This document shows, in pieces, positions 1,345 through 42,307 of a stretch of 64,000 nucleotides of DNA. The notes beneath the pieces are model-generated. The model was not told the DNA's origin. It did not search any database and worked only from the letters and a program-made list of their open reading frames with translations. Positions within the stretch are counted from its first letter, which is position 1. The number at the start of each line of letters is the position of its first letter. The DNA is taken from sequence record OM634661.1, one strand, 5' to 3'. Made by a program: the position numbers and the translations under genes.

Positions 1345-1803
1345 GTGGGGGATAATATAAAAGAAAGTCGTATTTATAAGATCTGGAGGGGCATGAAGTA
1401 CAGATGTGAGAGTACAGCCTCTCCTTCTTATCAATATTATGGGGCAAAAGATATTAAGGTCTGCGATGAATGGCAGGATTTCGATTCTTTTTATGTATGG
1501 TCTATTAATAATGGATATACAGATGATCTTACTATAGAGAGAATAGATGTAAGTGATGATTACGGACCACACAATTGCGAATGGATATCTAAGAGAAAAC
1601 AGTCTAGGAATAAAACCAACACCACCCTACTCCAGATAGATGGCGTAGTAAAGACTTTGTATGAATGGTGTAAAGAATACGGGTTGCGTCCTAATACAGT
1701 AAGAAGTAGAATGAAAAGAGGATGGAAAGGGAGAGATTTATTAAAACCTGCAAGGGAAAAGAAACCATCCTATTATAAGAACTTTTATGGCGGCGGCGCA
1801 TAA
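1345..1803 (+). CDS. Free-standing HNH homing endonuclease
   Basis: Phage HNH signature WRGMKYRC...YQYYGAKDIKVCDEW...LTIERIDVSDDYGPHNCEW...QSRNK and a C-terminal HTH-like tail (KTLYEWCKEYGLRPNTVRSRMKRGW). GTG start after AAGGGAGAG. Confidence 0.88.
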   Translation: MGDNIKESRIYKIWRGMKYRCESTASPSYQYYGAKDIKVCDEWQDFDSFYVWSINNGYTDDLTIERIDVSDDYGPHNCEWISKRKQSRNKTNTTLLQIDGVVKTLYEWCKEYGLRPNTVRSRMKRGWKGRDLLKPAREKKPSYYKNFYGGGA

Positions 1804-20714: not shown

Positions 20715-22580
20715 ATGCCAGCAACAAAACAGCATTTTGAATTAGTCAATCAAGTATACAATCAGCCAGATAATACTTTGATGTTAGTTGGCTCAGCGCT
20801 TGATGGTCCTAGTCAGATTCCATTTAAGATCAGAGAAGATATTAACCCTTATGATGTGTTAGGTGATTGTAAGATGGCAGATGCTTATTACTCTGCCCTA
20901 GCATCTGGATTAGAAAATATTATTCTTTATAGGATTAATGGATCACATGCAGAAGCATTAATCAAACCGACCTATAGAGAAGATCCAGTTATTCAAATAG
21001 AATCTGTCTCAGCGGCAGATGAATTTAATAAGGTCATTATCAGGGTGTTCATAGATCATATTTATATTATAGCTAGTGATGAAACAGGAAGAGTATATTC
21101 ATTTGATGATTATCCGACAGCTGCTGATATCACATATGCAATTAATAGAGATTCAGAATATGGATTAGTTGAAGTAAATGCAAAAGCTCTAGATCCAAAT
21201 TTTAAAATGTTAGGTATTGTAGATGAGACAACTGATATTTCTTTAACTGGTGGAAATGATGAAGCTGAGTTAATTCCATTAAGAGAAGAGAATCCTGACA
21301 TTTCTTTTACGATATCAAATATCAAAGAAAGATTGCTTGAATGTCTATTTGGACTAGATGAAGATGATCAAGCCGAAAGAAACCCAAACAGTGTGATTGG
21401 TTCAATGAATTATGGGGTGATATGTCTTGTAGATATATTCCATGATGACGATAAAGAAATTACGGAGATACTAGGATCTTTTTGCTTGAATAAAACAAGA
21501 CAATTAGGAACTGGAACTCTAGGTGTCATTGGAACATCTCCAATACTTGAACCGACAGAAGAAGATATCAAGTTAAAATATGATGCTTTAATGTTAGATA
21601 AAGGTATAGAGCATAGAGAATATTTCATCATACCTAGTGAAGAAGAGGCTCCTCCTACCCTGAATGTCACACTTGAACAAAATGATACAGGTGAGTGGGA
21701 AGCACATCTAAGCACAACAAACTTTATTATTAGTGACGAAGGTTTATATTCTGGAGAAGAAATAGATTATGATGAAGGATATGCTGATATTTATATTGAT
21801 GGCAAGAAAGTTGAACCTGCCTACAACAATATTTACAGTGTAGGTGATTTAAGACCAGGCGTTCATAAGGTGAAAGTTTCCTTAAAATCATATGATCACA
21901 GGTTCTTCCTATATCAAGGTCAAGTGATAGAAAAGACTGTAGAAATTACAATAGCTGGGGATGAACTTGTAAAAGCAAGAGAGATAGATCCTGATGCTTT
22001 GTATTATGTTCAAGTTGTCGTAGGAGATGGAAGATTAATAAATGTTGACCGAGTGATTTCTAATGCTTATAGTTATGCAGCAACACAAGCTTTAATCCCT
22101 TATCATGCAAGTATGACCAATAAATCTTTGTCTGGAATATCAAAAATACATTGGGAATTTAGAAAAGAAGATATTGCAACTTTATCAGGTAATGGTTATA
22201 CATGTATTGTACCATCTATTCGAAAAGGAATTGTGGCCTTTTCTTCTATATCATATGGGAAAAAAGACGCATCAGTTTTATCAAAACCTCAGTATTTAAG
22301 ATTGGCACAGAATGTGGTTTCTGCTTTACATGAAGATCTCGAAGAATATATCGGATCTACATATGAAGCGCTTCTGCAAAATGATGTGCAAGACAAAGCA
22401 GAAGAAATGTTGGAAGAGTTGATAGAAGACAAATCTATTAAAACATATACTTTTGAAATGTCTTTTTCAGAAGATAGACGATCTGCTGTAATACATATTG
22501 GCTTAGTTCCCTTCTCTGAAATTGAGGCAGTTCATTCTGTCACCTCTGTATCATTTCAAGAAGGAGTGATTGTAGAATGA
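20715..22580 (+). CDS. Tail-sheath-like paralogue with an inserted Ig-like domain
   Basis: LVGSALDGP start and YLRLAQNVVSAL...EYIG...IHIGLVPFSEIE end mirror the true sheath; insert at about 21640-21960. Confidence 0.65.
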   Translation: MPATKQHFELVNQVYNQPDNTLMLVGSALDGPSQIPFKIREDINPYDVLGDCKMADAYYSALASGLENIILYRINGSHAEALIKPTYREDPVIQIESVSAADEFNKVIIRVFIDHIYIIASDETGRVYSFDDYPTAADITYAINRDSEYGLVEVNAKALDPNFKMLGIVDETTDISLTGGNDEAELIPLREENPDISFTISNIKERLLECLFGLDEDDQAERNPNSVIGSMNYGVICLVDIFHDDDKEITEILGSFCLNKTRQLGTGTLGVIGTSPILEPTEEDIKLKYDALMLDKGIEHREYFIIPSEEEAPPTLNVTLEQNDTGEWEAHLSTTNFIISDEGLYSGEEIDYDEGYADIYIDGKKVEPAYNNIYSVGDLRPGVHKVKVSLKSYDHRFFLYQGQVIEKTVEITIAGDELVKAREIDPDALYYVQVVVGDGRLINVDRVISNAYSYAATQALIPYHASMTNKSLSGISKIHWEFRKEDIATLSGNGYTCIVPSIRKGIVAFSSISYGKKDASVLSKPQYLRLAQNVVSALHEDLEEYIGSTYEALLQNDVQDKAEEMLEELIEDKSIKTYTFEMSFSEDRRSAVIHIGLVPFSEIEAVHSVTSVSFQEGVIVE

Positions 22581-23209
22581 CAAAACCACCTAGATTACAA
22601 TCGGATTCATCTTGTGATTTTGACAAAATGACAACTATGATGTTTGAGCTTCTAAAAGAAGCTTGGGGTCCAGATTGGGGTGTATTCTGTGAAGCTTTCC
22701 CAAACGGAAGAGACAAAGAAGATATTGACTTCCCTATTATCACTTATGAATCAGAAAAATCTTTTCCAGGCCCAATAGGTCCATCAGGTAGAAAAGAGAT
22801 TAAACCTAGAAATAGAGAAACGATAATAGATGAAGAAGACAATGTAAAAGGATATGTCAGAGGACAGGTAATGGAACATGTGATTTTCTTTGATGTCTGG
22901 GAAGAGAACAATGCAAAGCTGTATAAGATTGCAAGTAAATTTAAGAATTTTCTCAATACATATACTGGGTTTTTGAAGAAAAACGGTGTTAAAGAAATGA
23001 TATTTTTAGAAGAAATTAAGCATCCTGGTGGTCTGTCTATTAGGGACAATGCGGTTGGTCGTAGATTCATATACCAAGTGATACTAGAGGATTTAGAATT
23101 CACGCCAAGCGAAGTATTTGAGAGAGTTACTGCTACGGTTGCCGCAAGGTTAAACCTAACAGATGACTATAAACCACAAGATGGAGATATTAACATTGTC
23201 ATTAAGTAA
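22577..23209 (+). CDS. Tail completion or terminator protein
   Basis: Directly upstream of the sheath gene; FPIITY and IFFDVW...FIYQVILE pattern. Confidence 0.55.
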   Translation: MTKPPRLQSDSSCDFDKMTTMMFELLKEAWGPDWGVFCEAFPNGRDKEDIDFPIITYESEKSFPGPIGPSGRKEIKPRNRETIIDEEDNVKGYVRGQVMEHVIFFDVWEENNAKLYKIASKFKNFLNTYTGFLKKNGVKEMIFLEEIKHPGGLSIRDNAVGRRFIYQVILEDLEFTPSEVFERVTATVAARLNLTDDYKPQDGDINIVIK

Positions 23210-23250
23210 CATATATCTTTTTCTTGAAAAACAAAAGGAGGAAAAAAATA

Positions 23251-24759
23251 ATGGCTAAGTATGATAACTTACCAGGCATTGAGGTCGAAATCGCTGACGG
23301 AGGTTTAATCCTTCCAGAAGATGCGACAACAGAAAGTCTATTGATCATCGCACCATGTGAAAATGAAGATACACCAGAACAACCTATGGCTGTTCGACAA
23401 TCAAGTGACCTTACTACAATGGGTTTCGGAGGCTTTGTTGTAAACGGCAAAGTCAACCAAATTGCTGTAGCATGGAAAGCCGCTTTTGACGGTGGTGCTC
23501 GTAACATCTCGTTACTAGCTCTTAAAGGTTCTACTGATGAAGAAAGATTTACATACTTGCAAGATGTCCTTTTCGGGATCTTAGAAGATTACTCTGTACA
23601 AAACATTGTTGCTGTTGGTGTATATGCTGATAAAGAAGCTGTTCTTACAGACACATCTTCACTAAGAGAAGAAGGAGTTAAAACTGAACAAACATTAGTC
23701 GCAGCATCAACTGTTAGTTATCCACTTGTTGTAGAAGCAGGTTCTGATACGATCACTGTTAGTGGTAAAACAATCACAGTGACTGCTAAAACATATTCAA
23801 AACCAGAATATCTTCTTGATGAAATTCGTAGAGAATTGAAAGCACAAAATCTAGTTGATATGGAAGTTTACTCTTCTAACTCAAGATTGCGATTTGTACA
23901 AGTAGGAAAGACTCCATTTGAAGTGGCTGCTGGAACTTTAGATCTAGGTATCGAAGGAACATCAACAGGATCTTCTGTAGGAAGCTTTGCTCAAATTCTA
24001 GCAACTTATGCTGAAATGCAAACAGTTCAACTTGGAAGCACTGTTGCTTATATCGGTACAACTGCACCTGTATCTAATACATTAAAAGATGTTAAAGACC
24101 ATGTTGATTATCTATCAAGCATTCACAATGAATATTCTGGTCACTTACAAGTATTTGCTGGTCCTGAATTTGGATACCAAGTACAAGGAAGAACAGATCT
24201 ATTCCTTATGAATGGTGTTGTTGCTTACGCAGCTCTTGTCACTACTTTGAAAGCTGAATCTGCAACAACTAACAAAACATTAACTGGTATGACAACTGTG
24301 AACTACAACCTTTCTCTTCGTCAATTAAATACTTTGACTGGAAACAAGTTTGTCACAGCTCGTCTTAAAAATGGTAGAGCTATCGTTACTGACGGTATCA
24401 CTACTGCACCTGATCGAATCATTGGAAACAAAGTATTTGCTTCTGATTACACTCGTTTGTCTACTCTTCGCATCACGCAAGCAGCAGTACAAACAGTTCG
24501 TGATATTTCAGAGCCATTCATTGGAGAGCCAAATGAGATGCCTCAGTATAACTCTCTTACTGCATCCATCAAAGGTGGATTAGATGCAATGAAAGAAGCA
24601 AAGGCAATCAACGATTACAACTTCACAGTTGTTACTCGTGGCGGTACTCTAACTGAAGCTATCGTTACATTAGAACTTGTCCCTGCATTTGAGCTTCGTA
24701 AGATTGCAGTGAATGTAAGTTTAAGCCCTGACTTCCAAAGAGATTCTGAAGACATCTAA
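23251..24759 (+). CDS. Major tail sheath protein
   Basis: ATG 23251 after AAAAGGAGG. MAKYDNLPGIEVEI start; C-terminal RLSTLRITQAAVQTVRDISEPFIGEPN...LELVPAFELRKIAVNVSL. Confidence 0.88.
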   Translation: MAKYDNLPGIEVEIADGGLILPEDATTESLLIIAPCENEDTPEQPMAVRQSSDLTTMGFGGFVVNGKVNQIAVAWKAAFDGGARNISLLALKGSTDEERFTYLQDVLFGILEDYSVQNIVAVGVYADKEAVLTDTSSLREEGVKTEQTLVAASTVSYPLVVEAGSDTITVSGKTITVTAKTYSKPEYLLDEIRRELKAQNLVDMEVYSSNSRLRFVQVGKTPFEVAAGTLDLGIEGTSTGSSVGSFAQILATYAEMQTVQLGSTVAYIGTTAPVSNTLKDVKDHVDYLSSIHNEYSGHLQVFAGPEFGYQVQGRTDLFLMNGVVAYAALVTTLKAESATTNKTLTGMTTVNYNLSLRQLNTLTGNKFVTARLKNGRAIVTDGITTAPDRIIGNKVFASDYTRLSTLRITQAAVQTVRDISEPFIGEPNEMPQYNSLTASIKGGLDAMKEAKAINDYNFTVVTRGGTLTEAIVTLELVPAFELRKIAVNVSLSPDFQRDSEDI

Positions 24760-27825: not shown

Positions 27826-30800
27826 ATGGCAGGAAGTGAGTATGAACAATATGTAAATAGTCGTAAAGAAGATGAATCCTCTTCTGGTCTTGGCAATGCC
27901 ATTAAAGTTGGAGCGTTAATAGGTGCTGGGGCATTAGGTTACAGATATAGAAGAGAATTAGGTAGTGGGATTAGAACTCTAGGCGCTGGAGCTATGAGTG
28001 TAACAAACAGAGGTGTTGCAAGATTAGCAAGAAGTGAAACATTAAAAGATCGAATCTCACAAACAGGATCTTTCTTAAAAGCAATGGATCACGCTTTAGA
28101 TATGAAATCTCCTGTCTTCCATCTTCAAAACAGGCAGCGATTCAATAATCGTTTTGACGACTCTATGAGAAGAAGCCTGACAGAACTTGAAAAAAGAAAA
28201 CAAGGTGTTATGCGAAGAACGCCTACTCAAATTGAACAATCATTAGATACTCTCAGACATAATAGAAAAATGGGAGACTTTATGACTGAAAGGGCATTAA
28301 GGTTTAATGCTTCTATGGATGCATTGAATAAAAAAATGCCAGACAGAATGCAAGGCGGTCTTAGAGATATTCTCAACAATATGTCTGATGACTTCTTTAA
28401 TGATCCGTCTAAAGGTAAGATAAGAGGTCTCTTAGATTCTTATTCTCCTGAAAACGCAAAGAAAAATAACTTTGCTTTCAATATACCTATCAAGTCAGAT
28501 TCAGAAAAGAGTCAGTTTATTGATGAGATGTTTGAAGTTCTTGATACATTCAGGGACACAAAGGCTCTTAGAAAAGAAGATGTAAAAGCTTCTAAGAAGA
28601 AAATGAGAGACAATATGTATGACGGATTTATGCGTCAACATAAAAAAGAAGACACCTTCTTTACCAAGATGATGGAGAAGCAAGGGTGGAAGCAAGCCAC
28701 TGTTGAAGATCTATTAATGCATAAGACAGGCGGCAAGATGGACAGTGGATCTATCAGGCTTCCAAAGAAAGATGGTTCTCATTTCGAAGCAAGAATGAAC
28801 AGTAAACTAAGCAAATTGATGAAGCTAGATCCTAAAGTAGGGGATCTGATTGCTGATCCAAATCTGTATGTAAACCCTAGAGGGGAAATGCTAGACCTCA
28901 GAAAAGCAGCTGAAACAACATGGAAAGGTCTTGCTGGGTTCAGGGATAATTTCCAAATTCCATTCTTACGATTTAACCCACTAGATTTAATGCACTTCAC
29001 ATCATTCCAAGCAGTTAAGGAAGCACCTCAAACATACTTTATGCGAAGAGGTACGATTGATGTTAAGACAGGTATTAGCAAAAACATAGAAACTGTTAGA
29101 CATCCTATGGCTCATAACCAAGATGCAAAGGTTGGACCATTAGGAAAAGAATATGTCTACATGAGTGGAAATGTCTATGATGTAGGAAGCGGGGATCTTG
29201 TTGAGACAGGTAAGTATCTAGCTTCTGGTCGTTTCGGTATGTATCCTCGTGCTTTATCTGGAATGGCAAACTTACATAGACAAGATTATAGAGATAGAGG
29301 ATTCTTAGGCAAGCTATTTGATGTAGGTAAACAAGAGAATGAAGCAGTATGGTCAAGAATGGCAAGTACTGTTACGAAGTTTAAAGACGAGAATTGGGAA
29401 CGTAATTACAAAACCCTGATTGCAAGCGGAAAGACAGAAGAAGCTTATAAGAACGTATATGCAATGCTTGAACAGCATACAACCCCTATGAGTGATGACA
29501 CAATATCTCATATCTCTTCTCAAGTTAAGAAGGCATATGGAAAGTTAGATATAGATATTGAAAATATGAAGTCACCTGAAGAGGTAATGACAACTTTAGG
29601 TAAGCTAAATGAAGCAACCATGCTTCCTAACTCTGGAGTTGTTCAGAATAAAGAATTAAGCTTACAGATCAATCAGTTCTGGGCGCAGTATAGAAATAAT
29701 CCAACAGAGTTTATGAAGAACCAGAGAATCAAGACTGATCATATGCCATATGTACCAGAAGCACTATCAGCTCTTGATATGCACGAAACAAATATGATCG
29801 ACAAACTAGATGACGTAAAGAGACTTATTCATCAACATGCAATTGCACAGGTTGAATTTGCAAACTCAAGTTCATCAAAAGTAACGGTTGGATCTTTAGT
29901 AAGAGAAGGTATTCGAAATGGACAGTTAGAAACAAATGCAATGTCTGAAGTAAGAGGATTAGATGTTCTTACTTCTATGAGATCTTATTGGGACGATGTG
30001 TATAAAAATGGTCCTCTTGAAAAGAATGCAGCGCTTGATCAATTTGCAAACACTGTAATGGATGAATCAAAACCATTCGTTCATGCACTTGATCAAACCA
30101 TTAAAGAACAGACTCCTTGGTACTCAATGGGTACAGGAGACTCACCTCCTCAATACTTTGGCTATGTTGGATATCAAACAATGGATAAAGCCAAAGGTGC
30201 TAAGTGGATGCTTGAAAACTTTAACAAGCAATATCAAAATGGAGAGTCTCCACTTAAAGCTGGTGTAAATTCATTAATGGGAGTATTAGGTCAGCCATTT
30301 GCTGGTCGTAAAAATATTCAAGATGTCACAACAGCAACCCTTCCATTCTATTACTTTGCAGAACGTCTAGATAACGCTATTTCTCAAGCAGGTCTTGGTT
30401 TATCTCAACAAAACAGGGGATCAATGCAGAGCATCTTACTGAATCAATTTGGAAGACGAATCATACTTCCTTATGTTGCTTATAAGCAAGCACAGTATCT
30501 TGATGATATGACAGGTGATGTTGTAAGTGACAAGCTTGGAGAAACTTATGCGAATATGCATGAGGATGTTGGAAGGATTAAAGAGATATTCGGACTGAAT
30601 AAAATCGGTGAAGATATTGCTTCTATACTTCCTGGTATTGAACAATTGAAAGAAATCACACCTATTAAAATGTTTAACTTTGCGACAATGGGTGCTTTCT
30701 TTGATAATAGGTCTGGTGAAGAAATCAGAGAGTATTATGAAGATGGGGAAGATCCTATTAGGAAAGGTCGTTTCTGGGGTATTGGATCAGGTACACCTTG

Positions 30801-33800
30801 GCAGGGCGGAAAGATAGATCGTTTTGAACCAAACTGGTACAGAAAGATGAAGTCTGATTACCAATACACAGATACGATGTATGGAAGCTCTTCAGAGTAT
30901 TGGGCAAACCACTGGATGCCTACATTAACACATCCATTTGCTCCACTCAAACATTTCTTACTAGATCCTAACCATTGGGCGAACAAGCACAAAGATGACA
31001 GACCTTATCCAGTCACTGGTGGAATTACAGAGCTTGAAAGTATTCCTTTAGTCGGTCCTTTATTAAATGCAACAGCAGGAAGAATTATTAATCCGACAAG
31101 AGTTGATCCAAGACTCGAAAAGAGTCATAGGGAATACTTAAAAGAAGTCAATGAACATATCAAGTCTCAATATGACCAAGCAACATCTGGCGGCTCACTT
31201 CAATTCATGCCAGCTGGTGGATATGAAATTATTGATGGAAATCTTGGTGGAGGCGAAGCTGGAAGCGGAGAAGGATATGGATACGGAGATGGCAGCGGGA
31301 CTGGAACTGGTGGAGGAGATGGCACACCTGTTGTTACCTCTGACGATATTGGTGGAGGTAGAGGTTCAACTGGTGCTTCTGGTGATTTAAGAGCAAGTCT
31401 TGCCATTATGAACAAAGCTTATTCTGAAAATGGAGGACCAGCACTAGGCTCTGGAGGAAGTCCTATTAGATCAATTACTGGACTAAATGACTTGAGAGAT
31501 CCTGATATGGTATCTGATTTAAAAGATATTGGACAGATTACAGATGCATCAGGAATTGCACGAGATGCTTTCTATAGCCTAAGTGAGGTTGCTGGTATCT
31601 ATGGTTTCTCTGTTAAGGCAGCCACTGGATTTGAAGAGGGTGGAAGAGGAACAACACTTGAAAATGCATCAAGAATGACAAGCTATGCAAGAGCATGGTG
31701 GGATCTTGAAATGGGCGGTATGGGTGGACAGCTATCAGAGATTGGTAGACGTTATGTTCCTCGTGACCCAAATAAAAGATACTACAATCCAATAAGAAAC
31801 CAAATGCCAGACTGGATAGACAAAATTGTCCAGTATAAACTCTTTTAATTGCTGGGAACCCCTTAGAGCCATTAACACCACAACGTAGCTGGTGACAGCA
31901 AGCGTGATGGTTTAAAAAGATAATGGATTGGGCAATCAGCAGCTTGACTTAATTTAATTCCCATGTAATGATATGGTAAAGTACTTCGTATGTGAAAAAG
32001 GAGGAAATACTATGGATTACAGAATAAAAGATATGAGAAATAAGAAATATGGAAGGCTTACTGCTTTGAGGTATATAGAAACCAGAGCAGGTGGAGCATA
32101 CTGGATGTTTAAATGTGACTGCGGAAATGAGAAGATCATTAACGGCTCAACAGTAAGATGCGGTAAAGTGAGTTCATGTGGTTGTCTTGCTAAAGAAGTT
32201 TTTTCTAAAAAGATCACTAAGCATGGAATGGCAAATACAAGGACATATAATATATGGGTCGGTATAAAACAGAGATGTTTAAATCCAAAGTCATCTGCGT
32301 ATGAAAACTATGGAGCTAAAGGAATAACAATTTGTGAAGAATGGATGGATTTTGAAAAGTTCTTTGCAGATATGGGTGAAGCACCTGAAGGGTTCACTAT
32401 TGAAAGAATAGATAATGAACTCGGTTATTCAAAAGTAAATTGCAAATGGGCAAATCGCTCAGAGCAAAATATAAATAAATCATACAAAAACAACACTACT
32501 GGTATGAAAAACATATCTTACAATAAAAGAGATGATGATTACTCCGTTGGTATTTGCAGAAATAAAAAGAGATATAGAAAGAACTTCAAAAATCTCGAAG
32601 ATGCAATCAAATGGAGAGACTCTCTCTTAGAGGAATTAAATAGTTGAGTTCAACGACTAGAGAAAGGGAAGGTCTTGAAAAAGGCAAACCGAGTATCGTA
32701 CAGCCAAGTGGTGTCCACCTTTCGTAATAAGAAAGAATTGCTTATAAAAAGCATAGGGCTTAAATGGAAAAAGAGAGGGCTAGATATTCTAGCTATGATA
32801 TAGTCTAGTCTACATGGAAAGCATGTAGCAGTTCATAAGAGAACGGCAACGAAGTAACGACTCGTTGTGAATGTAACGGCCAGGAGTAGAATACTTTACT
32901 GATTTCCAACATGGTGATCCTTTTGTAAAAGTAGCAAAGGGTGAAATGAGACTCCCAGGAGAAGCATATGAAACCCTAAACAAATTACATCCTGATGCAT
33001 TTGGAGAGTATGGCGCATTTGATAGATTTAAAATATTAGCAGATGTTGCTCCTTATAGTAGTCAATATAAATTCTACAAGGGCGTTGTCTCACAAATGAA
33101 CCAAGAAGGTCTCCTTGATGAGTCAATGCAAAAGCAATACAAGAAAGTAAGAGATCAAGTATCAGCTAAAAAAGATAAATATAACTTCTATAATAGAAGA
33201 TTTGACAATGCAGATATTTATCAAGAAGAAGTAACAATCACAAAAATTATAGATCAAAACACATTTTTGACAAAAGAACATCCAAATAATCCAATTAAAT
33301 TAGCGGGCGTTAGTATTAAAGCTGATGATGAAGAAACACAAGCATGGTTGAGTCAGTATATCTATGAAGGTGCTACAGTTAAAGTAGGATTAGATTCTGA
33401 TCCTTTATATAGAGTCAGAGATGACATGATGAATACAATGAGAGCTGTTGTATATGCAGGTGAAAGATCAGAGGGTATGCCTTTCTACATGTCAGAAAAA
33501 GGGCAGAACTTAAACTATATGCTTGCCAATAGATCTTCTGGTGGATTCATGGGTATTGGTGGAGAAAAAACTGTATCTGTTAAAGACGATGGTAGCGCAA
33601 CTTCTACTCAAGCCTTATATAGTAACGATCAAATCACAGTAGGTAAGATATGGGAGTACTTAACTCATGACATTCTTCCACAAGCACCAATTGTAGGAAC
33701 AGTGGCTGATAAGTTCTTACAGATCAGAAGTCCACTTGAAGAATATAAGAGAACTCAGATTTACGGTAAGGCATGGAAACCTTGGGAAGAACCAATTAGC

Positions 33801-34979
33801 GGATGGGTAGAACCAATGCTTGATACAATCAGAGAGAGACATCCTTTAGTGGCAGCAGCAGAAGGTTATGGAATCGGATGGTTGTTTGGAAGAAAAGGAA
33901 GAGGTAAGTATTATGGCAAATGGGTCGGAGCAATTATTGGTGGAGGATTAAGTGCTTCTAGGGTATTCGGTGAAGCGATCAGTTCCATGACTCCAGGCAA
34001 AAGCGGATATGATGATACATGGATGCCAGAGAGAAGAAGAAAAGAACGAGAGATTAATGAGTATTTTGATAGATTAAAATACATGAAGTTCAAAGGTCTC
34101 TATGAGAAGACAAGGCAAGAAGCATTAAAGCAAGAAGGCATTGATATTGAAAAAGTTATCGGTGATGGAGCAAATAAAGGAAAGCAAAATAAGCAAGAGA
34201 GAAGATTTGCTGATAGCGTAAAAAAATGGCTTTCCATTAGCAAAAAGATAGGTTATGGTGATGAAGAACAAATAAAATCACAATTAAGTGAAATCAGAGA
34301 TAGAATGAAAATCATAGATGAAGACAGACCTAATGTTGAAATTGGTCCGTTAGCAATGCTTGCTTTAAGATACAAAGCGGAATATGAGTCAACTCTTTAC
34401 GGAGCAGATCCAAATGGAGACATGACAAAAATATTCAGAGCATTACCTTCTAAAGATAGAGAGTTCTTCACTGAGTTCATGAAGGCTGCACCTGGAGAAA
34501 GAGAAGAAATCTTACGACTTGTTCCTAAAGATCAAAGAAGATTCTACCAAGCAAAATGGGGATTGGACACAGATGAACCTGAAAGCTTAGGATCTTACTT
34601 CTCAGACCACTACTTACCTGATGCAAATTGGGAAGGGTGGAAGCCAAATATTGATCTAGAAAGTATTAAATTGAAAGTTGTTAAAAATGAAGCACTTGAA
34701 TTAACAGAGTTCGGATTATGGGGCGATGATGAAAAAAGAGCAATGGAATCTGGTGTAGATAGTATTGATATAGATAGACCAACATTAGGTTCTAGAATTG
34801 ATGTAGGAAGAATTGAAAATATCCTAAGAGGCTCTGGTTTAAAAGACGTATCTGTATCCATGAACGTTTCAAGTGGTCAATCAGAAAGTAAAGTAGATAT
34901 TGGTATGAATATACTTAGAGATAGAACAGAAGAGCTTGCAAGTGAGATTAAGGAAAATATATCTAGTATATTCTCTTAA
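27826..34979 (+). CDS. Tape-measure-like protein, two exons (27826-31817 and 32879-34979), 2030 aa after splicing
   Basis: Joining TGG AT|G CCA gives NQMPDW-M-PGVEYFTDFQHGDPF in frame with the 677-aa ORF. Follows the chaperones; helical; hydrophobic segment near the C-terminus. Confidence 0.8.
31818..32878 (+). mobile_element. Group I intron (1061 nt) carrying a homing endonuclease
   Basis: P1 ACTGGAT/GTCCAGT with U31817-G31828 wobble; P element AATTGCTGGGAA; Q element AATCAGCAG; R element GTTCAACGACTAG; S element ATGATATAGTCT; P9 CTACATG/CATGTAG; terminal G at 32878. Confidence 0.93.
32012..32647 (+). CDS. Intron-encoded HNH homing endonuclease with AP2-like C-terminal domain
   Basis: ATG 32012 after AAGGAGG; CDCG...SCGC; WVGIKQRCLNP...TIERIDNELGYSKVNCKW; NNTTGMKNISY...FKNLEDAIKWR. 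Confidence 0.88.
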   Translation: MDYRIKDMRNKKYGRLTALRYIETRAGGAYWMFKCDCGNEKIINGSTVRCGKVSSCGCLAKEVFSKKITKHGMANTRTYNIWVGIKQRCLNPKSSAYENYGAKGITICEEWMDFEKFFADMGEAPEGFTIERIDNELGYSKVNCKWANRSEQNINKSYKNNTTGMKNISYNKRDDDYSVGICRNKKRYRKNFKNLEDAIKWRDSLLEELNS

Positions 34980-35002: not shown

Positions 35003-38000
35003 ATGGACAAAAACAATCTTGTACAAAGATATGGCGGTGTCTCAGGCGATATAGTCTGGGATAGCCGCTCTCCTTCTAATTTCTCGAACACAAATAGTGC
35101 AGAAAGAAATGAAGGAGCACAGACTGCTGCAAAAGCGCTTAATGAATTAGATTACAATTCAAGTGCATATAAAAACTCATTAGGTATCTGGAGTCAAGTG
35201 AATCCAGCTAACCCTTTCCAAAATAATGGACAACAAGCCATTCAGGGATTAATGAATATGAAGGAAGGTTCTGATGTCTTTGTTTATGATACAGAGATAC
35301 TAGGAACAGCACCAATGCATAGAAAAAGAAATAGTGTCGATTTCTACACTCCTACAGAAATTGCAATACAGCATACGAAGTTTATTAATGGAAAGTTGCA
35401 AACAGTAGAAAATAGCAACCGATCTCTTCTTATTCAACCTACAACAGATGTGTACAACAAATTAGATGATCTTATTAGGCAAGCAGCAAAAGGCAGATGG
35501 GTTGGTATGACAGATGACCAGCGCAGAACCCTATCGGATTTGACTCTGTATTCAGGTGATGCATCAGAGTTATTTGACGTACAAAATGTTCATGGACGAA
35601 AGATTGTTACTGTTAAAACACAGAACAGAAAAGTTCATCCTTTACAGGGAAGTGTTCTTTCATCTTCTAAAAATATTGCGAGAATGCAACAAGGACTAAA
35701 AAACTTAATGGAGTTTGGAACAGCACCTAAAGACATGGCATGGGAATTAAATAGATTTATGCAAGGTACAACAAATGCAATGTTTGCAGGTTACAACGTT
35801 CATAACTTTGATCAACCTATGATGCTTGATTATCTAAAGAATACTGTAGGTAAGTCATTAGGTAAAGACAGCGTAGCTCAAAGATCATTAGATAAACTCT
35901 ATACAGCTATGTCAGCAACACAAGTAGATGCATTCTCTGCTATTAAGACATTATACAAAGATCCTTTTAGTCGATTTGGCGCTAGAACAACACTTGAAAG
36001 AATGGATGAATTGATTAATGGAAGTAAAAAGAGAGATGGGTCTCGTATCGCTCACTTTGGTCTTTCTGATGCAAAGGTAACAGTAGATACCTTTAATAGT
36101 ATATTAGCAGATAATAATGTTTCAAAAATGATCTCTTCTGGAGGTAAAGCAAGAATCCCAGGATACGGAACATGGACTTCTAAGAATATTGAAGTAGGAG
36201 ATTTATTATTCGGTAAAGCAGGTCTTAATAGTCATGATTATGACGGTGTATACAAAAGAAGAGGCGGCGTATTAGAGCCAGCTTACAATATTAAAACAAA
36301 CAATATCTATAGAAATACAACATATGAAGTAAAGAACTTCTTTGATGGTGTTGAAATTGATGGGAAGAAAATGTTTGGGGTTCAATTATACAACCAAAAT
36401 GATGATCTGCATCATACTATTTTTAGAGATAATATGGGTGAACTTCAAAAAGCGATTCATGGATCTTTAGAGCCAGCTAACAACAAGACGGATGCTATGA
36501 GAAGAACAGCTTCAAGACTTCAAAACGAAGATAGAGCACTAAGAAGATGGAGAAAAATGTTCTCTACAGAATCTGGCGGCGGTATGGATTTAGCAACTAG
36601 ACTTTATAACGCACTTGATATTGAAAGAGATGTTCGTAAGATAGCTGCTCAAGAAGGATTAAAAGACGAGAAGCTAATCAAACAACAGATTGACCAAATG
36701 ATTTTAAAGAACAATGAATGGAATACAGATGAATTTGTTCGAGACTACCACACAATGAAGGGTCGATTAAAGCATGAAGAAAGCTATGTAAGAAGCTTTA
36801 TGAACAAAGTACAGTCTAGTGAAATTGGTGGAGATACACCTTCAGCCAAAAGAGCACAGAATCTTGCAATGGCAAACTTCGGAAAGCTTCTTGATCAAGA
36901 GTTTGGTGTGAATGAGTACAAGAGAAAGTTACCAGCTGGAAGCAGAGCCTTACCAATCAACATGAATGGTGAAACTCAGTACTTAAATATGAATGGTGTA
37001 GAAGGATTAAAGAGACAAATGTATGGATCTCTTTATAAAGGTCATGTATCAAAACCAAATCCAAGTATCGTTAAGCAGAGATACAAAGAGCTTCTTGGAG
37101 AATTAAAAACAACCAATGCAATTAGTGCAAAGAAATATGAAGAAGTACTAGGTGCTTTGGATCATATAAGAAGTGGAGATTCCCTAGACAACTTATTAAC
37201 AGAGCTTTCAAACGAAGTCATGAATGAAAGAGACAGGAACTCTAAGCTTGGTCTTTCTCATATACCAGCTGAAAATCCAACTGGTGTAAACAAAACAAGT
37301 GAAAGACACAGGAATGTGTCAAAAGCTCTGAAGTCTGGTGAAATGGAAAAAATCATGGGTAGAGCTATTAACTCTGTAGATGCTTACAATATGCAGTGGG
37401 ATGGCAAGACACCAGTTCGTTTCTTAGGAAAAGAAGTAGAAGAAATGATGGATATCCATGACAAAGCAATTGGTAATATACTAAGCGACTCTGGTATTAA
37501 TAAAGATGCTCGTATCGGATTTGAAAATGCCAAAAACTCTAGATCGTCTTTAACAAAATTAGCACAAGCATTTGTGAATAATGGAATGCATGTTCAGTTT
37601 AGATATAACGAAGTAAGTAAAGGTTTAGTTATGGCACTTGCTTCACAAAAAGTTTCTGAATCTGTATTAGATGGATCTCTAAATGATTTAATGAAGAATA
37701 ATAATGTAGCGACAGTAAACCTTCCTAGAATGAATGAAGATGGAACAATTACACTAGGATCTCAGAACAGAGTAGCAAGACTTACAGCTCAAAGAAGTAA
37801 AGATGGGAGCTATCAGGTTGTCACAGCATTTGATGAAGTTATTCAATCATTAATGAGAGCAGCTCCTTTTGCTAAAGATCAACTTGAAATGGCAAGTGCA
37901 ACAGGCAAGAAGAATGGAATGCTTCGTATTGATAGCACATTGAATAGAAGAGCACGACTTGCGATGCAGAATCTTTCCATGAATAACAAAAAGATGAACA

Positions 38001-41000
38001 ACTCAGATATGGAAGACATGTATAAAACAGGATCTAGATTAGCGAACTGGATGCGTGGAAGAACAATAGACATCTCTGCATTTGCAGAAGAATGGTATAC
38101 AAACTTCTATGAAACAGCTTCTGATAAAGCTAGAAGAGAAATGAGATTGTCATCTCCAGATCGAATTAAGGCAAATATGCAATCAGGTGATTTGTTTGTA
38201 AACTCTATGGGTGTCAATGCAAGACGTATTTTCCAGAGACAGGTAGACGGCTGGTTAAGTGAAAACTTTAATATCAACGTAGATATGCACTCTGTAAAAG
38301 ATACTCATGTATCAAACTATATTCGTGCCACAGCAGATACAAGGCAGTTAACACCATTTGGATTCTTTAACCCAATGGCTCGTGAGAACATTATGAAATC
38401 TGTTAACTATCATCACCTAGATGGCAGTACTGTTAGGCAAAACCTACTAGCACGTAACTTTAGTGAAGATCGTATTGATCGAATCTTAAACAGAGGGGTT
38501 GTCACAGACAAAGCTTTAGAAGTAATGGGCGATGAAGTAGGATATCTGAATCTAAGAGCAGCATACATGGATGATAAAAGCATAGCTGAAAGAGCAACTT
38601 CTTTAAAATCTACATATGAAGAAAGAGCAAAGAACCCGAATCTTTCTGAAAAAGAAAGAGCTAAGTATGCTAGACTAGCGAAATCCATTGGTACGGCAGA
38701 AACGATCTCTACATTTGATGGTATGTTTATCATGGCTGATGACGTTGCTTCGGCATTTGAAATCAAGCGTGAAAAGAATATTAGAATATCACCAGGAGCA
38801 GAACTAAACAGTGCCATTGTAGATAAAATGAAGAAACATGTTGAATCTATGGGTGGTACATTTGATCTATCTCAAGATATGTCTATGGATGTAAAACTAA
38901 TTGGCAATGGAGTAGCAAGAGGAAAGAATGGCTCTATCACGATTAGTGACATTGCAAAAGATGATACATTCAGAAAACCAGTTGATGTATATGATAAATG
39001 GAGTAATGATGTCCGAATTAAGAAATGGGATGCAAAAGAAAATGTACTTGTATTAGAAGACACTGTGAAAACAGGTAACTCTACAAAGTTTGTTTCTGAT
39101 GCAGGACATCGTGTAACAAGTACAATTCTTCCAAGAGAAATTGTTGAAGCACTTGCTGGCGGTCAAGCAGATACAATCCTACCTGCTTTTGAAACAAGTA
39201 AGAGCCAGTGGGGAACTGAAATTAACAAGTATGTTAGCTTAGCTGTAGATGAGGCGAAGAGACAAGTTGAGTCTGGGAAATTAACAGTAGGTAAACTGAC
39301 TAAGGAAGAAACTACTCAGACTGTACTAGAACAAATTAAAGGCATGATGAGTAAGAATATTTCTAGGGAACTAGAAAAAGAAGCACTTGTTAAAGAAGGA
39401 CGAATTGTTCTATCTGATACATTTGGTATTGCTGGCGACAATGAATTAAGTATCGGATCAAGGGTCGATGCACAAGGAAGAAGACTTGGCGGATTGAATG
39501 GATTCTTATCTGATGTAGACAAATTGCTAGGAACAAGTTTCCAAGGTGGCAAAACCATTTTTGGTCAGGTAGGAATGGGACTACAGGATGTATACAATTG
39601 GGAGGACAGAATAGGTCTTTCTAATGAGAATTCAGCTGGACTTGTTAAGTACGGAAGAAAAGAAGCTGATATGATTTCCTCAAGAGCAAGAGCAGTATTA
39701 GGAGAAGAGAGCGCAGTAAGTACATGGCTTAATTCTCATATTAGAAATGCGGCTACAGCTCAAAAGAAAGATATTGAGAGAATCGGAAGCGGTCTTGTTA
39801 GAACCATTATAGAAGGAAGAGATGTTACTCCAAGTAGTGGAGATGTTGTTATTAGAACAACAGGAACAGCATTTGAAGCAGATAATATTGGTAGAGTGAC
39901 AGATCATGGAGTCAGAGAAATATCCATGAATGCAATTGATAACTTACCAGAAGTTACTCAAAAGAATCAAAAGTTCACTGTTCAAGATTACAACAGAACA
40001 ATACTGAACTTTGGTCGTACAGAAGGAACTTTTGGAGATGGATTGTCTTTTTCTGATTCTATTAAACAGAACAAAGGAACTGCTCTACTTGAAATGCCTG
40101 ATGAAACATTCTCAAGAAAATATCTAAGATTAATAGACTTTGGAGATCCTGCTAATAGAGCCATTGGTACGACTCCAGTAATGGAAGAGCTTGAGAAGGG
40201 CGCTCAGCAGATCTGGAGAGGCATTAAAGAGTATCAAGCTGTTGGGTCTAATGATAGCTTAACGCCTCAAGAAAGGGAGTCTAGGGTTAATAAGATTAGA
40301 GAGAACGTTGAAAGATCTATCTCAGACTATGAGGGTAAAGTAGCTCATATGACAAGTTCATCAAGGGACGGAAGTCTTGAGAAAAAACTTGGTTCTGCAA
40401 AGATGGATATGTCAGGTCGTTTTAGAATCCAAGGTGTAAGTCCATTTGCAAACTATGAAAAATCAGGAGATGGAACTTGGAATCAAGTTGGTAAATATCA
40501 AGAAGGCCATGTCTATATGAGTAGGCAAGCAGTTGGTGAAATGATTGATGGAGCAGAGAAGAATATTGCTTCTCAAATCATGGGATTGACCAATGAAGAA
40601 ATTAGTGGTCATGGACGCAATTTGAAGTCGAAAGTTCTTGATTATGTAAGAGATAATGGTTTATATGGATTTGTAAACCGTTACCCAACAATTAACCAAT
40701 CAACAATACAAGCAATGAAAGTATCTATTGATGAGTCAATGTCTTCAAAAGACAGAGGCGCAAGGTTAACTGTTGGAACAGCAGCAAGACTTAAAGCCGA
40801 TTATGACGGTGACTTCTTATCTACAGTATTAGCTCATTATAGTACAGATAATGCTAAAGCAATTCATGAAGACTTAGCGAAATTGCAACATGAAGAGCAT
40901 AGAGCAGGTCTACAAAGCGCACAAGGTGTTATGGATGACCTAGTATCAGATATTGATGTAAAAGCTAAACAGATGAACCTGACTGTTGGAGAGTTGATGA

Positions 41001-42307
41001 AGAGTCATGATGAAAGACACATTGATCTAAGAAATCAAATGATTGGTGCTAGAACCACAAGAATGGATGCTTTAGAATCAGCAGAGGCTCGTCTTGGTAA
41101 AGAATTCATTGGCTTCGTAGACAATACACGTTTTAAAGTATTGACACTGGCTCAAGCAACATATGAAACACTTCAAGAAACAACTGGTCGAAATGGTTCT
41201 CCACTTATGACAGGTCAAGAAGCAGCTAGAAGAAGAGAAATAGTTGAAGAATTCGGAAGAACATTCTCTCAGGATTTAATCTCTTCTAAGAAGTTTAGTG
41301 CAGAAACAGTAAAAGAATCTGTATTAAAAGTAAATCCTAGCTTATCTGGAATGGATCTTGAAACAGAAATCGAAAAGCAGATGTCACAAAGATATCAAGT
41401 CGTTGCATCTATGAACGAATCTATTTTAAATCCAACAGAGACAAACTTGCAGAAGTTCAGACAGGGAAATGAAATACTTGGTCTCTTTGATACTTCTACA
41501 CAGCAAGGTGCAGACAAACTAGACAACATGCTTTCTGAGATTCAATATATAAACAAATTAAATAGTAGTGCAGGAACAAGCACATCTGGTCCACTCAACA
41601 ATGCATTCTTAAAAGTAGGTCTTTCAGAAGGAAGTTCATTTGATCATCTTAGAAAGACATTGAGTGGTCAAGGCAACATGGTAATACCAACAGATGCTGT
41701 TAAAAATATTATGAGTATTGCTGATCCAGAAACAGCGGGTCAATTAGAAGAAGGTATTGGAGTCTACAAAAAGTCTCTTATTACAAACCTAGAAAGAATG
41801 AGCGGGAACCAAGATACAATCATGGATGCAATCGGTAAATCTCATTCTCTTGAAAACGAACAACTTCTAAGTAATGCAATGGCAGCAGATGAAGCTGGAA
41901 CAAAATTAAGAAGTGTTGTTGGAAAAGTAATGCCTGGTGGAATACATGGCGGTGGAGTGATGGCTGGTGCAGCAACATTTATGGGGCTATGGGCAACAAG
42001 TGCTTTAATGAGAAGTGGGCCAACACCTGAGTCTATGAAAGAATCAGCTCCTGCACCACCACCAGTTGAAAACCTTGCACAAAGCCAACCAACAGCACGA
42101 GTTGCTGAAAATGGCGAACATGTGAATATTCGAATATCTGCAAAAGATGCAAAGAATATGTCACAAGAAGACATAGCAGCTCTTGTTCATCAAGAAGTAA
42201 GTGGTATGTCAGGTATACCTATGAATATCAATCTAAATACAAACGACAACTTACAGAGAATCGACAAGAACTGGCTTCAACAAAAATTCTCAGATGCTAT
42301 GGGATGA
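35003..42307 (+). CDS. Candidate single-chain two-barrel virion RNA polymerase with N-terminal DEDDh exonuclease
   Basis: Exonuclease motifs D96-T-E98, D270, H351-x4-D356. Beta-like FDG (1238-1240) and K1362-x5-G-H-R1370. Beta'-like DMSGR (1802-1806), NRYPT (1892-1896) and ADYDGD (1932-1937). Hydrophobic helix near the C-terminus. Confidence 0.8.
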   Translation: MDKNNLVQRYGGVSGDIVWDSRSPSNFSNTNSAERNEGAQTAAKALNELDYNSSAYKNSLGIWSQVNPANPFQNNGQQAIQGLMNMKEGSDVFVYDTEILGTAPMHRKRNSVDFYTPTEIAIQHTKFINGKLQTVENSNRSLLIQPTTDVYNKLDDLIRQAAKGRWVGMTDDQRRTLSDLTLYSGDASELFDVQNVHGRKIVTVKTQNRKVHPLQGSVLSSSKNIARMQQGLKNLMEFGTAPKDMAWELNRFMQGTTNAMFAGYNVHNFDQPMMLDYLKNTVGKSLGKDSVAQRSLDKLYTAMSATQVDAFSAIKTLYKDPFSRFGARTTLERMDELINGSKKRDGSRIAHFGLSDAKVTVDTFNSILADNNVSKMISSGGKARIPGYGTWTSKNIEVGDLLFGKAGLNSHDYDGVYKRRGGVLEPAYNIKTNNIYRNTTYEVKNFFDGVEIDGKKMFGVQLYNQNDDLHHTIFRDNMGELQKAIHGSLEPANNKTDAMRRTASRLQNEDRALRRWRKMFSTESGGGMDLATRLYNALDIERDVRKIAAQEGLKDEKLIKQQIDQMILKNNEWNTDEFVRDYHTMKGRLKHEESYVRSFMNKVQSSEIGGDTPSAKRAQNLAMANFGKLLDQEFGVNEYKRKLPAGSRALPINMNGETQYLNMNGVEGLKRQMYGSLYKGHVSKPNPSIVKQRYKELLGELKTTNAISAKKYEEVLGALDHIRSGDSLDNLLTELSNEVMNERDRNSKLGLSHIPAENPTGVNKTSERHRNVSKALKSGEMEKIMGRAINSVDAYNMQWDGKTPVRFLGKEVEEMMDIHDKAIGNILSDSGINKDARIGFENAKNSRSSLTKLAQAFVNNGMHVQFRYNEVSKGLVMALASQKVSESVLDGSLNDLMKNNNVATVNLPRMNEDGTITLGSQNRVARLTAQRSKDGSYQVVTAFDEVIQSLMRAAPFAKDQLEMASATGKKNGMLRIDSTLNRRARLAMQNLSMNNKKMNNSDMEDMYKTGSRLANWMRGRTIDISAFAEEWYTNFYETASDKARREMRLSSPDRIKANMQSGDLFVNSMGVNARRIFQRQVDGWLSENFNINVDMHSVKDTHVSNYIRATADTRQLTPFGFFNPMARENIMKSVNYHHLDGSTVRQNLLARNFSEDRIDRILNRGVVTDKALEVMGDEVGYLNLRAAYMDDKSIAERATSLKSTYEERAKNPNLSEKERAKYARLAKSIGTAETISTFDGMFIMADDVASAFEIKREKNIRISPGAELNSAIVDKMKKHVESMGGTFDLSQDMSMDVKLIGNGVARGKNGSITISDIAKDDTFRKPVDVYDKWSNDVRIKKWDAKENVLVLEDTVKTGNSTKFVSDAGHRVTSTILPREIVEALAGGQADTILPAFETSKSQWGTEINKYVSLAVDEAKRQVESGKLTVGKLTKEETTQTVLEQIKGMMSKNISRELEKEALVKEGRIVLSDTFGIAGDNELSIGSRVDAQGRRLGGLNGFLSDVDKLLGTSFQGGKTIFGQVGMGLQDVYNWEDRIGLSNENSAGLVKYGRKEADMISSRARAVLGEESAVSTWLNSHIRNAATAQKKDIERIGSGLVRTIIEGRDVTPSSGDVVIRTTGTAFEADNIGRVTDHGVREISMNAIDNLPEVTQKNQKFTVQDYNRTILNFGRTEGTFGDGLSFSDSIKQNKGTALLEMPDETFSRKYLRLIDFGDPANRAIGTTPVMEELEKGAQQIWRGIKEYQAVGSNDSLTPQERESRVNKIRENVERSISDYEGKVAHMTSSSRDGSLEKKLGSAKMDMSGRFRIQGVSPFANYEKSGDGTWNQVGKYQEGHVYMSRQAVGEMIDGAEKNIASQIMGLTNEEISGHGRNLKSKVLDYVRDNGLYGFVNRYPTINQSTIQAMKVSIDESMSSKDRGARLTVGTAARLKADYDGDFLSTVLAHYSTDNAKAIHEDLAKLQHEEHRAGLQSAQGVMDDLVSDIDVKAKQMNLTVGELMKSHDERHIDLRNQMIGARTTRMDALESAEARLGKEFIGFVDNTRFKVLTLAQATYETLQETTGRNGSPLMTGQEAARRREIVEEFGRTFSQDLISSKKFSAETVKESVLKVNPSLSGMDLETEIEKQMSQRYQVVASMNESILNPTETNLQKFRQGNEILGLFDTSTQQGADKLDNMLSEIQYINKLNSSAGTSTSGPLNNAFLKVGLSEGSSFDHLRKTLSGQGNMVIPTDAVKNIMSIADPETAGQLEEGIGVYKKSLITNLERMSGNQDTIMDAIGKSHSLENEQLLSNAMAADEAGTKLRSVVGKVMPGGIHGGGVMAGAATFMGLWATSALMRSGPTPESMKESAPAPPPVENLAQSQPTARVAENGEHVNIRISAKDAKNMSQEDIAALVHQEVSGMSGIPMNINLNTNDNLQRIDKNWLQQKFSDAMG

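Follow-up and report, generated by a model that had tools for sequence, protein, structure and literature searches.

The window, a stretch of 64,000 nucleotides, corresponds by megablast to bases 1-64000 of the jumbo phage vB_BauM_KLEB27-3 (OM634661.1), a Bacillus australimaris phage of 216.7 kb for which a literature text search on the phage name found no paper. Three consecutive open reading frames (ORFs) lie on its plus strand, at 27826-31848 (1340 aa), 31973/32012-32647 and 32946-34979 (677 aa). The public annotation gives them as three separate coding sequences (CDS), gp031, gp032 and gp033, and no intron is annotated. Here we propose that the two outer ORFs are one gene for a 2,030-aa virion protein, interrupted by a mobile group I intron that carries the middle ORF in its P6 region, a reading to which we give a probability of roughly 90%.

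The reading frame and its homologues carry the first part of the case. The codon at 31816 is divided after its second base; G32879 makes it ATG, and the CCA that follows at 32880 is in the frame of the 677-aa ORF. Joined at the DNA junction …CTGGAT|GCCAGG… (31817 to 32879), the segments 27826-31817 and 32879-34979 form 6,093 nt, that is 2,030 codons with no internal stop, which translate as ...NQMPDW-M-PGVEYFTDFQHGDPFVK; the junction-spanning peptide expected from the 2,030-aa model is NQMPDWMPGVEYFTDFQHGDPFVK. In tblastn, the 405 codons at the end of exon 1 and the 400 that open exon 2 were queried separately. Both exon ends match a single annotated ORF of 1,930-2,025 aa in Bacillus phages WH1, Edson and 0305phi8-36 and in Moorella phage MTATph1, and between the two matches lie exactly three bases, one codon, in all four of these GenBank relatives, each of which is uninterrupted at the site. 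Against these four homologues the spliced model aligns without a gap across NPIRNxMPxW-[M/L]-PGxxYF, reading …NPIRNQMPDW-M-PGVEYF… in KLEB27-3, …NPIRNEMPDW-M-PGAEYF… in WH1 and …NPVANTMPDW-L-PGSDYF… in 0305phi8-36. Just one other in-frame cut ends in G; this cut, 31818|32880, would put A rather than U before the splice site and is excluded by the comparative data.

The public coordinates look different in this light. Unspliced RNA meets a stop codon at 31846-31848, inside the intron, after 1,330 native residues, and its product would end in the intron-encoded tail …DWIDKIVQYKLF; the final 10 codons and the stop of gp031 as annotated are intron sequence. As annotated, gp033 omits 22 conserved exon-2 codons that are without a start codon of their own. 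These codons (32880-32945) encode PGVEYFTDFQHGDPFVKVAKGE, and in their frame TAA stands upstream at 32874-32876 while the first start codon is ATG 32946. Because an in-frame stop precedes them and they have no start codon, they are translatable solely as a continuation of exon 1, which supports the view that an intact virion protein would need splicing. Tail assembly, we infer, would in turn depend on self-splicing.

The excised sequence has the anatomy of a group I ribozyme (Table 1). P1 has a 10-nt loop, and the wobble pair U31817•G31828 marks the 5' splice site. The classical P element AAUUGCUGGGAACC begins at 31847, the Q element AAUCAGCAGC at 31934, the R element GUUCAACGACUAGA at 32648 and the S element AUGAUAUAGUCU at 32795, and the ORF loop is enclosed by a helix of GCTTGACT (31942-31949) and AGTTGAGT (32642-32649). 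The two intron halves were folded and analysed as separate pieces. Minimum-free-energy folding gave z = -2.7 and -3.5 for the two; it yields P1, P4, P5 and P5a in the 5' half and P8, P9 and the terminal hairpin in the 3' half. An alternative register for the 3' strand of P3, AAAGAG (32770-32775), was rejected, since the register that covaries is AGAGAG. Hairpins between P7 and the 3' strand of P3, which we take to be a signature of the IA subgroup, suggest an intron of the phage IA type.

Family relationships point the same way. By DNA similarity the 5' part of the intron matches 252 records and the 3' part 848, and the 5' core is 79% identical over ~107 nt to that of Twort nrdE intron 2, an intron named from experiment. 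An ORF-less relative with the same core passes the Rfam model RF00028 at 70.6 bits and fixes the naming of the helices. An exact-pattern scan with the 5' core found at least 117 IMG/VR loci; among the loci listed, the core is compact in 43, and the others are interrupted by an ORF in P6 or further downstream. For 33 non-redundant compact, ORF-less relatives the RNAalifold consensus has P3, P4, P5, P5a, P6, P6a and P9, with both-side changes in 21 of its 34 pairs, and the P7 pairing GACUA/UAGUC is invariant across the family. A covariance model built from 24 compact ORF-less relatives, none of them from this gene, recovers both halves of the intron in the window: the 5' half from 31833 onward with 117 bits (E 1.4e-28) and the 3' half at 32712-32838 with 28.4 bits (E 6e-6). 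These scores and the one-codon gap in the four relatives go far beyond what chance would give. Elsewhere in the 64 kb the model returned nothing convincing; a 14-bit match at 60830-60932 on the plus strand (E 0.03) falls within the uninterrupted gp045 ORF and was put down to chance.

The same intron recurs in other phages. A profile search of IMG/VR gave 77 loci encoding the host protein family; the junction is exactly contiguous in 56, and in most others the offset is a matter of alignment slack, a few codons in size. At one locus, L156, the frame changes across a 1,004-nt insert; this locus has a homologous ribozyme and an ORF of 211 aa with 66% identity to the window ORF. Searching with the intron ORF gave 24 close clusters, all of 169-218 aa, and six look-ups of these clusters led to the contigs L203-L209, with ORFs laid out as ~1,350-1,430 / 207-214 / 550-690 aa, apart from L207, where a second insertion breaks the downstream part. 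Seven further jumbo-phage contigs (L156, L203, L204/L205 and L206-L209) carry a 986-1,050-nt insert at the same codon. Another candidate, L164 with a 546-nt gap, was discarded as a second occupied site: at the junction itself it is uninterrupted, and its insertion, one at the protein level, lies further downstream. The second interruption in L207 (5262-6236) is a 324-aa ORF with LAGLIDADG and helix-turn-helix domains, which might represent either a second intron or an endonuclease gene that stands alone; a ribozyme is called there by neither Rfam nor the family covariance model.

With L204/L205 counted as one, the comparison covers eight distinct copies including the window. All eight have the insert between the Trp and Pro codons, U at position -1 and a terminal G, and the exon frames are open in every intron-bearing copy. 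P1 pairs in 55 of 56 cells, with two positions changed on both sides: the L204 exon has GAC->GAG where its guide has CAG->CAC, and the L156 exon GAU->GCU where its guide has U->G. P3 pairs in all 48 cells, and at three positions the changes are compensatory. The sequences of P8, P9 and the terminal hairpin vary from copy to copy yet stay complementary, the covariation of P9 and the terminal hairpin being read by inspection of the eight-copy alignment only. Taken together, the eight copies supply independent proof, at the comparative level, that the two splice sites are right and that P3 pairs over a long distance with the ORF in between, and we assign 31818-32878 as a group I intron with exact predicted splice sites at 31817|31818 and 32878|32879. 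The initial annotation of this DNA had proposed the same fusion of the 1340-aa and 677-aa ORFs, the same intron with P1, the P, Q, R and S elements and a terminal G, the same boundaries, the 6093-nt frame of 2030 aa and a stop at 31848 that makes splicing necessary. Gap-free alignment, recovery of each element where it had been placed, the uniform U and G borders with the one-codon gap in the four relatives, the absence of internal stops and the 22 start-less conserved codons uphold it in these points.

Table 1. Coordinates of the interrupted gene, its intron and the elements of the predicted ribozyme (window positions)
Feature	Position	Strand	Description
gp031	27826-31848	+	GenBank 'structural protein', 1340 aa
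gp032	32012-32647	+	GenBank 'hypothetical protein', 211 aa
gp033	32946-34979	+	GenBank 'structural protein', 677 aa
Exon 1 of virion-protein gene	27826-31817	+	1,330 codons + AT (first two bases of split codon)
Group I intron	31818-32878	+	1,061 nt; begins after U31817, ends in G32878 (omega G)
Exon 2	32879-34979	+	G32879 completes ATG, then 699 codons + stop
P1	31811-31834	+	exon ACUGGAU (31811-31817) / guide GUCCAGU (31828-31834)
5' core half	31840-31949	+	P3 5' strand through P6 5' strand
P3 5' strand	31840-31845	+	CUCUUU
P4	31850-31855 / 31936-31941	+	UGCUGG / UCAGCA
P5	31860-31862 / 31930-31932	+	CCC / GGG
P5a	31869-31874 / 31921-31926	+	CCAUUA / UAAUGG; distal P5 extension with GUGA tetraloop cap
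P6 5' strand	31942-31949	+	GCUUGACU (RNA letters)
Intron ORF (gp032)	32012-32647	+	211 aa, in P6 loop; last codons and stop overlap P6 3' strand
3' core half	32642-32828	+	P6 3' strand through P9
P6 3' strand	32642-32649	+	AGUUGAGU (RNA letters)
J6/7		+	UCAAC
P7	32655-32659 / 32801-32805	+	GACUA / UAGUC
Peripheral hairpins	32660-32771	+	P7.1/P7.2 position
P3 3' strand	32772-32777	+	AGAGAG; adjoins P8
P8	32778-32784 / 32788-32794	+	GGCUAGA / UCUAGCU
J8/7		+	AUGAUA
P9	32810-32816 / 32822-32828	+	CUACAUG / CAUGUAG; GAAA loop
Terminal hairpin, short tail and G32878	32846-32878	+	CAACGA (32847-32852) / UCGUUG (32862-32867)

In the mechanism we propose, the late transcript would fold into P1-P9, an external guanosine would attack after U31817, and the freed exon 1 would then attack after G32878, joining ...TGG AT to G CCA... 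and giving the 2,030-aa protein. Splicing itself, its catalysis and its timing are, like the steps just given, what the sequence predicts. The 211-aa protein of the P6 loop would most likely be the element's DNA endonuclease, which would cut intron-less copies of the gene in a mixed infection so that repair copies the intron in.

The intron ORF truly starts at ATG 32012, with AAAGGAGG 8 nt upstream and conservation from MDYR onward in the eight copies, and it is full length (207-214 aa) in eight divergent hosts. It matches PHROG 374, 'HNH endonuclease', with E 7e-66. The family alignment has an invariant CxC…CxC, R88-C89, R132, Y139 and N143, with D134, C144, W146 and N155 nearly invariant. 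When the family profile was compared with PDB sequences, I-HmuI (1u3e) was a weak match (E 0.058), in which …sieRiDn…Y…NcrW…N aligned to the HNH motif. Among the relatives, one matches AP2 (E 1e-4) and one an I-HmuI NUMOD-like domain. An AlphaFold2 (AF2) model has a predicted local distance difference test score (pLDDT) of 91, and its only fold match is a weak AP2 domain, a C-terminal sheet plus helix (E 0.12); the fold search with this model did not return I-HmuI. The layout is thus an N-terminal CxC...CxC zinc-ribbon-like motif, a central HNH-like core with Arg for the first His, and a C-terminal AP2-like domain. We regard the product as a putative homing endonuclease from an HNH-like family that is poorly characterised, with uncertain nuclease activity. 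The initial annotation had likened this ORF to I-TevI of the T4 td intron; the position in the P6 loop bears the comparison out, and the enzyme type does not, there being no GIY-YIG or HNH match in Pfam and no similarity to I-TwoI.

Two observations touch on this ORF. Gp002 (1393-1803, plus strand, 136 aa), near the left end of the genome, is 38.5% identical to residues 73-166 of the intron ORF (E 6e-17) and has the look of a shorter paralogue that stands alone. Upstream of the intron ORF, at 31944-31972 on the plus strand, is a promoter-like TTGACT, 17 nt and a TG-extended AATGAT; the first hexamer is within the 5' strand of P6, TTGAC and TGTAA are partly conserved in 5 of 8 copies, and the number of promoter-like matches in the region is not above chance.

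The distribution of the intron is patchy. Host-protein identity to KLEB27-3 is highest in the intron-less WH1 and Edson (65% for the exon-2 part and 48% for the last 900 aa of exon 1), and the empty site of both keeps the same ATGCCAGACTGGAT|GCC core. Among carriers the corresponding host identities span 62/48% (L203) to 38/29% (L207), and the intron ORF stays 57-84% identical. Because the intron is present patchily at one codon, with the closest relatives empty and distant carriers keeping the ORF, it is probably mobile; gain and loss by homing would give this pattern, which does not itself prove ongoing activity.

Several points weigh against a mobile, self-splicing element. The window ORF has no nuclease domain in Pfam (no HNH or HNH_3 at E up to 5), and none was found by Pfam or NCBIfam in it and 45 relatives (46 in total), GIY-YIG included. 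In its family an invariant Arg stands opposite the catalytic His of the I-HmuI HNH motif. That the ORF is better conserved than the host protein could be due in part to constraint and not to recent transfer. A P10 pairing of the guide region with exon 2 was looked for in the sequence and none is evident. Finally, at the gathering threshold Rfam has no match in the whole window, and a permissive scan with RF00028 reached 19.6 bits (E 0.03), below the gathering score of 50 bits, which is a curated cut-off and not a structural feature; the match covers only GAUAUAGUCUA and the P9 hairpin. Among the ORF-bearing copies only L156 scored (37.3 bits), and the window, L156 and L203-L209 all fall below the gathering score. 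Interruption of P6 by the ORF probably explains the low score. An Infernal search with group I models had been suggested at the outset as a check; its result is split, the general model falling short and the family-specific one detecting both halves.

The first two of these points, together with the AP2-like and weak I-HmuI similarity as the only resemblances, favour an intron that is real and no longer mobile. Its P6 ORF would be a remnant that binds DNA or a helper of the maturase kind, and the element would pass down vertically and now and then be lost. We consider this unlikely, since the ORF is kept at full length in eight divergent hosts with an identity above that of the host protein, and since the intron is missing from the nearest host relatives yet present, at the identical codon, in distant ones. 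Alternatively, a free-standing endonuclease gene might have split the virion gene into two cooperating proteins of 1340 and 677 aa without any RNA splicing. Such genes in pieces would fit the three annotated CDS, the silence of Rfam at threshold and the ATG at 32946, which follows AAGGG and could act as a start. However, the ORF is flanked on both sides by a group I core that is complete, with covariation and with canonical U and omega-G boundaries in eight copies; excising 31818-32878, no more and no less, gives back the frame and the one codon that is missing; and the 22 conserved codons upstream of the annotated ATG, with their invariant G-D-P, would stay untranslated. We find this explanation very improbable. 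Equally hard to credit is a decayed, splicing-dead relic that leaves the gene effectively truncated in vB_BauM_KLEB27-3: J8/7 is one base off consensus (AUGAUAUAGUC in the window versus (A/G)AAGAUAUAGUC in 33 relatives) and P10 is not visible, but no paired element of the core is damaged, the two exon frames run open through 2,030 codons, a second copy (L206) has the same AUG variant of J8/7, and the phage is a propagated isolate whose matching 0305phi8-36 product is a virion protein by mass spectrometry. A mobile intron in a single virion-protein gene remains the reading we prefer.

Which virion protein is interrupted is a separate question, and here the initial annotation, which had named the tape-measure gene, is not supported. 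The host gene matches orf145 of 0305phi8-36 in sequence, a 'virion structural protein' found in virions by mass spectrometry (PMC2147016), and the authors of that work assigned the tape measure from its length to the next gene, orf146 (PMC2147016). In the window the orf146 position is taken by gp034 (35003-42307, 2,434 aa), a match by position. Gp029 and gp030 precede the host gene, and the genes in the same position of WH1 and 0305phi8-36 are annotated as tail chaperonins; the tape-measure label would rest solely on this position after a chaperone pair. Tape-measure models of Pfam, PHROG and NCBIfam match neither exon nor three full-length relatives, a GpH-like match in BFVD has a probability of 0.06, and gp034, both exons and full-length relatives give no informative family against Pfam, NCBIfam, PHROGs and PDB sequences. 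The host gene probably encodes a large virion protein beside the presumed tape measure, not the tape measure itself.

The host family has 458 matches, mostly of ~2,000 aa, on contigs of up to 250 kb. One relative (P0103, naturally 1,189 aa and corresponding to the C-terminal 60%) gave a compact multidomain AF2 model with pLDDT 78 and a predicted template modelling score (pTM) of 0.77, the N-terminal ~840 aa lying outside the model; this part is thus predicted to be compact and not rod-like, where a tape measure is expected to be an extended, largely helical rod, its length in proportion to the tail. The junction falls in a high-confidence, loop-rich stretch of the model and within the block that holds the alignment's invariant G-D-P…G.R.PG..Y. 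Fold matches in the PDB are limited to a staphylococcal-nuclease-like domain (E 2e-3), and the matches in BFVD are members of the family and a protein named 'Large polyvalent protein associated domain-containing' (E 1.5e-39). The nuclease-like OB-fold domain lies downstream of the junction, at ~630-760 of the P0103 model (Foldseek E 2e-3, TM up to 0.68 on target), and some relatives have precomputed SNase Pfam matches or are named thermonuclease.

By alignment, the intron lies inside the codon that separates Trp from Pro-Gly in the best-conserved motif of a virion protein shared by 0305phi8-36-like jumbo phages. Three relatives of the host gene (P0026, P0109 and P0112, 2,374-2,479 aa) have a LAGLIDADG intein after HGDP[Y/F], 16 codons downstream of the intron site. 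The intron (in the window and seven contigs) and the inteins (in three relatives) both target the ~20-codon stretch NxMPxW-[M/L]-PGxxYxxxFxHGDP[Y/F]. Tentatively, and as an idea less likely than not to hold, this stretch would be the functional centre of a ~2,000-aa virion protein family, so far uncharacterised, in jumbo Bacillota phages. The protein might be an enzyme that is delivered, with kinship to 'large polyvalent proteins', and not a ruler; the intron ORF could also be a homing-endonuclease lineage with His->Arg in its HNH motif.

Comparison with known elements places the intron among familiar ones. Twort nrdE intron 2 with I-TwoI (AF485080) shares the layout of 5' core, ORF in the P6 region and 3' core, besides the core identity over ~107 nt given above, but its host gene encodes a ribonucleotide reductase and I-TwoI is dissimilar to the window ORF. 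The td gene of T4 likewise has a group I intron in which the endonuclease ORF forms a loop on P6; it differs in that I-TevI is a GIY-YIG enzyme, whereas the window ORF is without such a match. In I-HmuI (PDB 1u3e), the HNH homing endonuclease of a Bacillus phage intron, the HNH motif is the counterpart of the core …ERIDN…Y…NC.W…N in the profile of the window ORF family, with the two reservations already stated, the weak E of 0.058 and a catalytic His that is an invariant Arg in the window family. The LAGLIDADG inteins belong to another class of selfish element at the same conserved motif; they are removed at the protein rather than the RNA level and are absent from the window gene.

Closest in setting are the introns of B. 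cereus-group prophages, where group I introns of types IA1 and IA2 occur at three positions in tape-measure genes and in tail-tube and terminase genes (Tourasse and Kolsto 2008, PMC2504315). The carriers of the tail-tube intron include BwK1, a distant relative of 0305phi8-36, and the introns are placed in the most conserved stretch of the host gene with a patchy distribution (PMC2504315). The window intron is alike in all three respects, being in a virion-structural gene of a Bacillus phage, in its most conserved stretch and patchy; it differs in host gene and site, the orf145 family not being reported there (PMC2504315), and 0305phi8-36 itself is intron-less at the site. DNA matches of the intron family also include a head protease/scaffold gene of AR9 and a staphylococcal terminase gene. 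Because of the B. cereus-group, AR9 and staphylococcal cases, a structural-gene host is not unusual, and the initial statement that such hosts are uncommon had been overtaken by the prophage cases published in 2008.

The immediate consequence is a correction of annotation, from three CDS to one 2,030-aa virion protein and an intron-encoded ORF, and at least seven metagenomic jumbo-phage contigs need the same change. The Rfam group I model misses ORF-bearing copies, and such split genes are probably under-called. The insertion sites of intron and inteins draw attention to the motif under the greatest constraint in a large orphan virion protein and offer a starting place for structural and functional work. 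The element is an unannotated example of a well-known kind of selfish DNA, and it does not change how group I introns work or where they are found.

Two further loci in the window deserve mention. The terminase large subunit gp010 (5296-8250, plus strand, 984 aa) contains an unannotated intein, the second selfish element of the window: Pfam Intein_splicing covers residues 69-458 (E 1.5e-16), and a LAGLIDADG_3 domain occupies 269-335. At gp023-gp025 (20715-24759), two 'tail sheath protein' CDS have a 210-aa hypothetical ORF between them. The region is matched by neither Rfam nor the intron model, and these are probably duplicated genes rather than a split gene; the work on 0305phi8-36 mentions a tail-tube paralogue.

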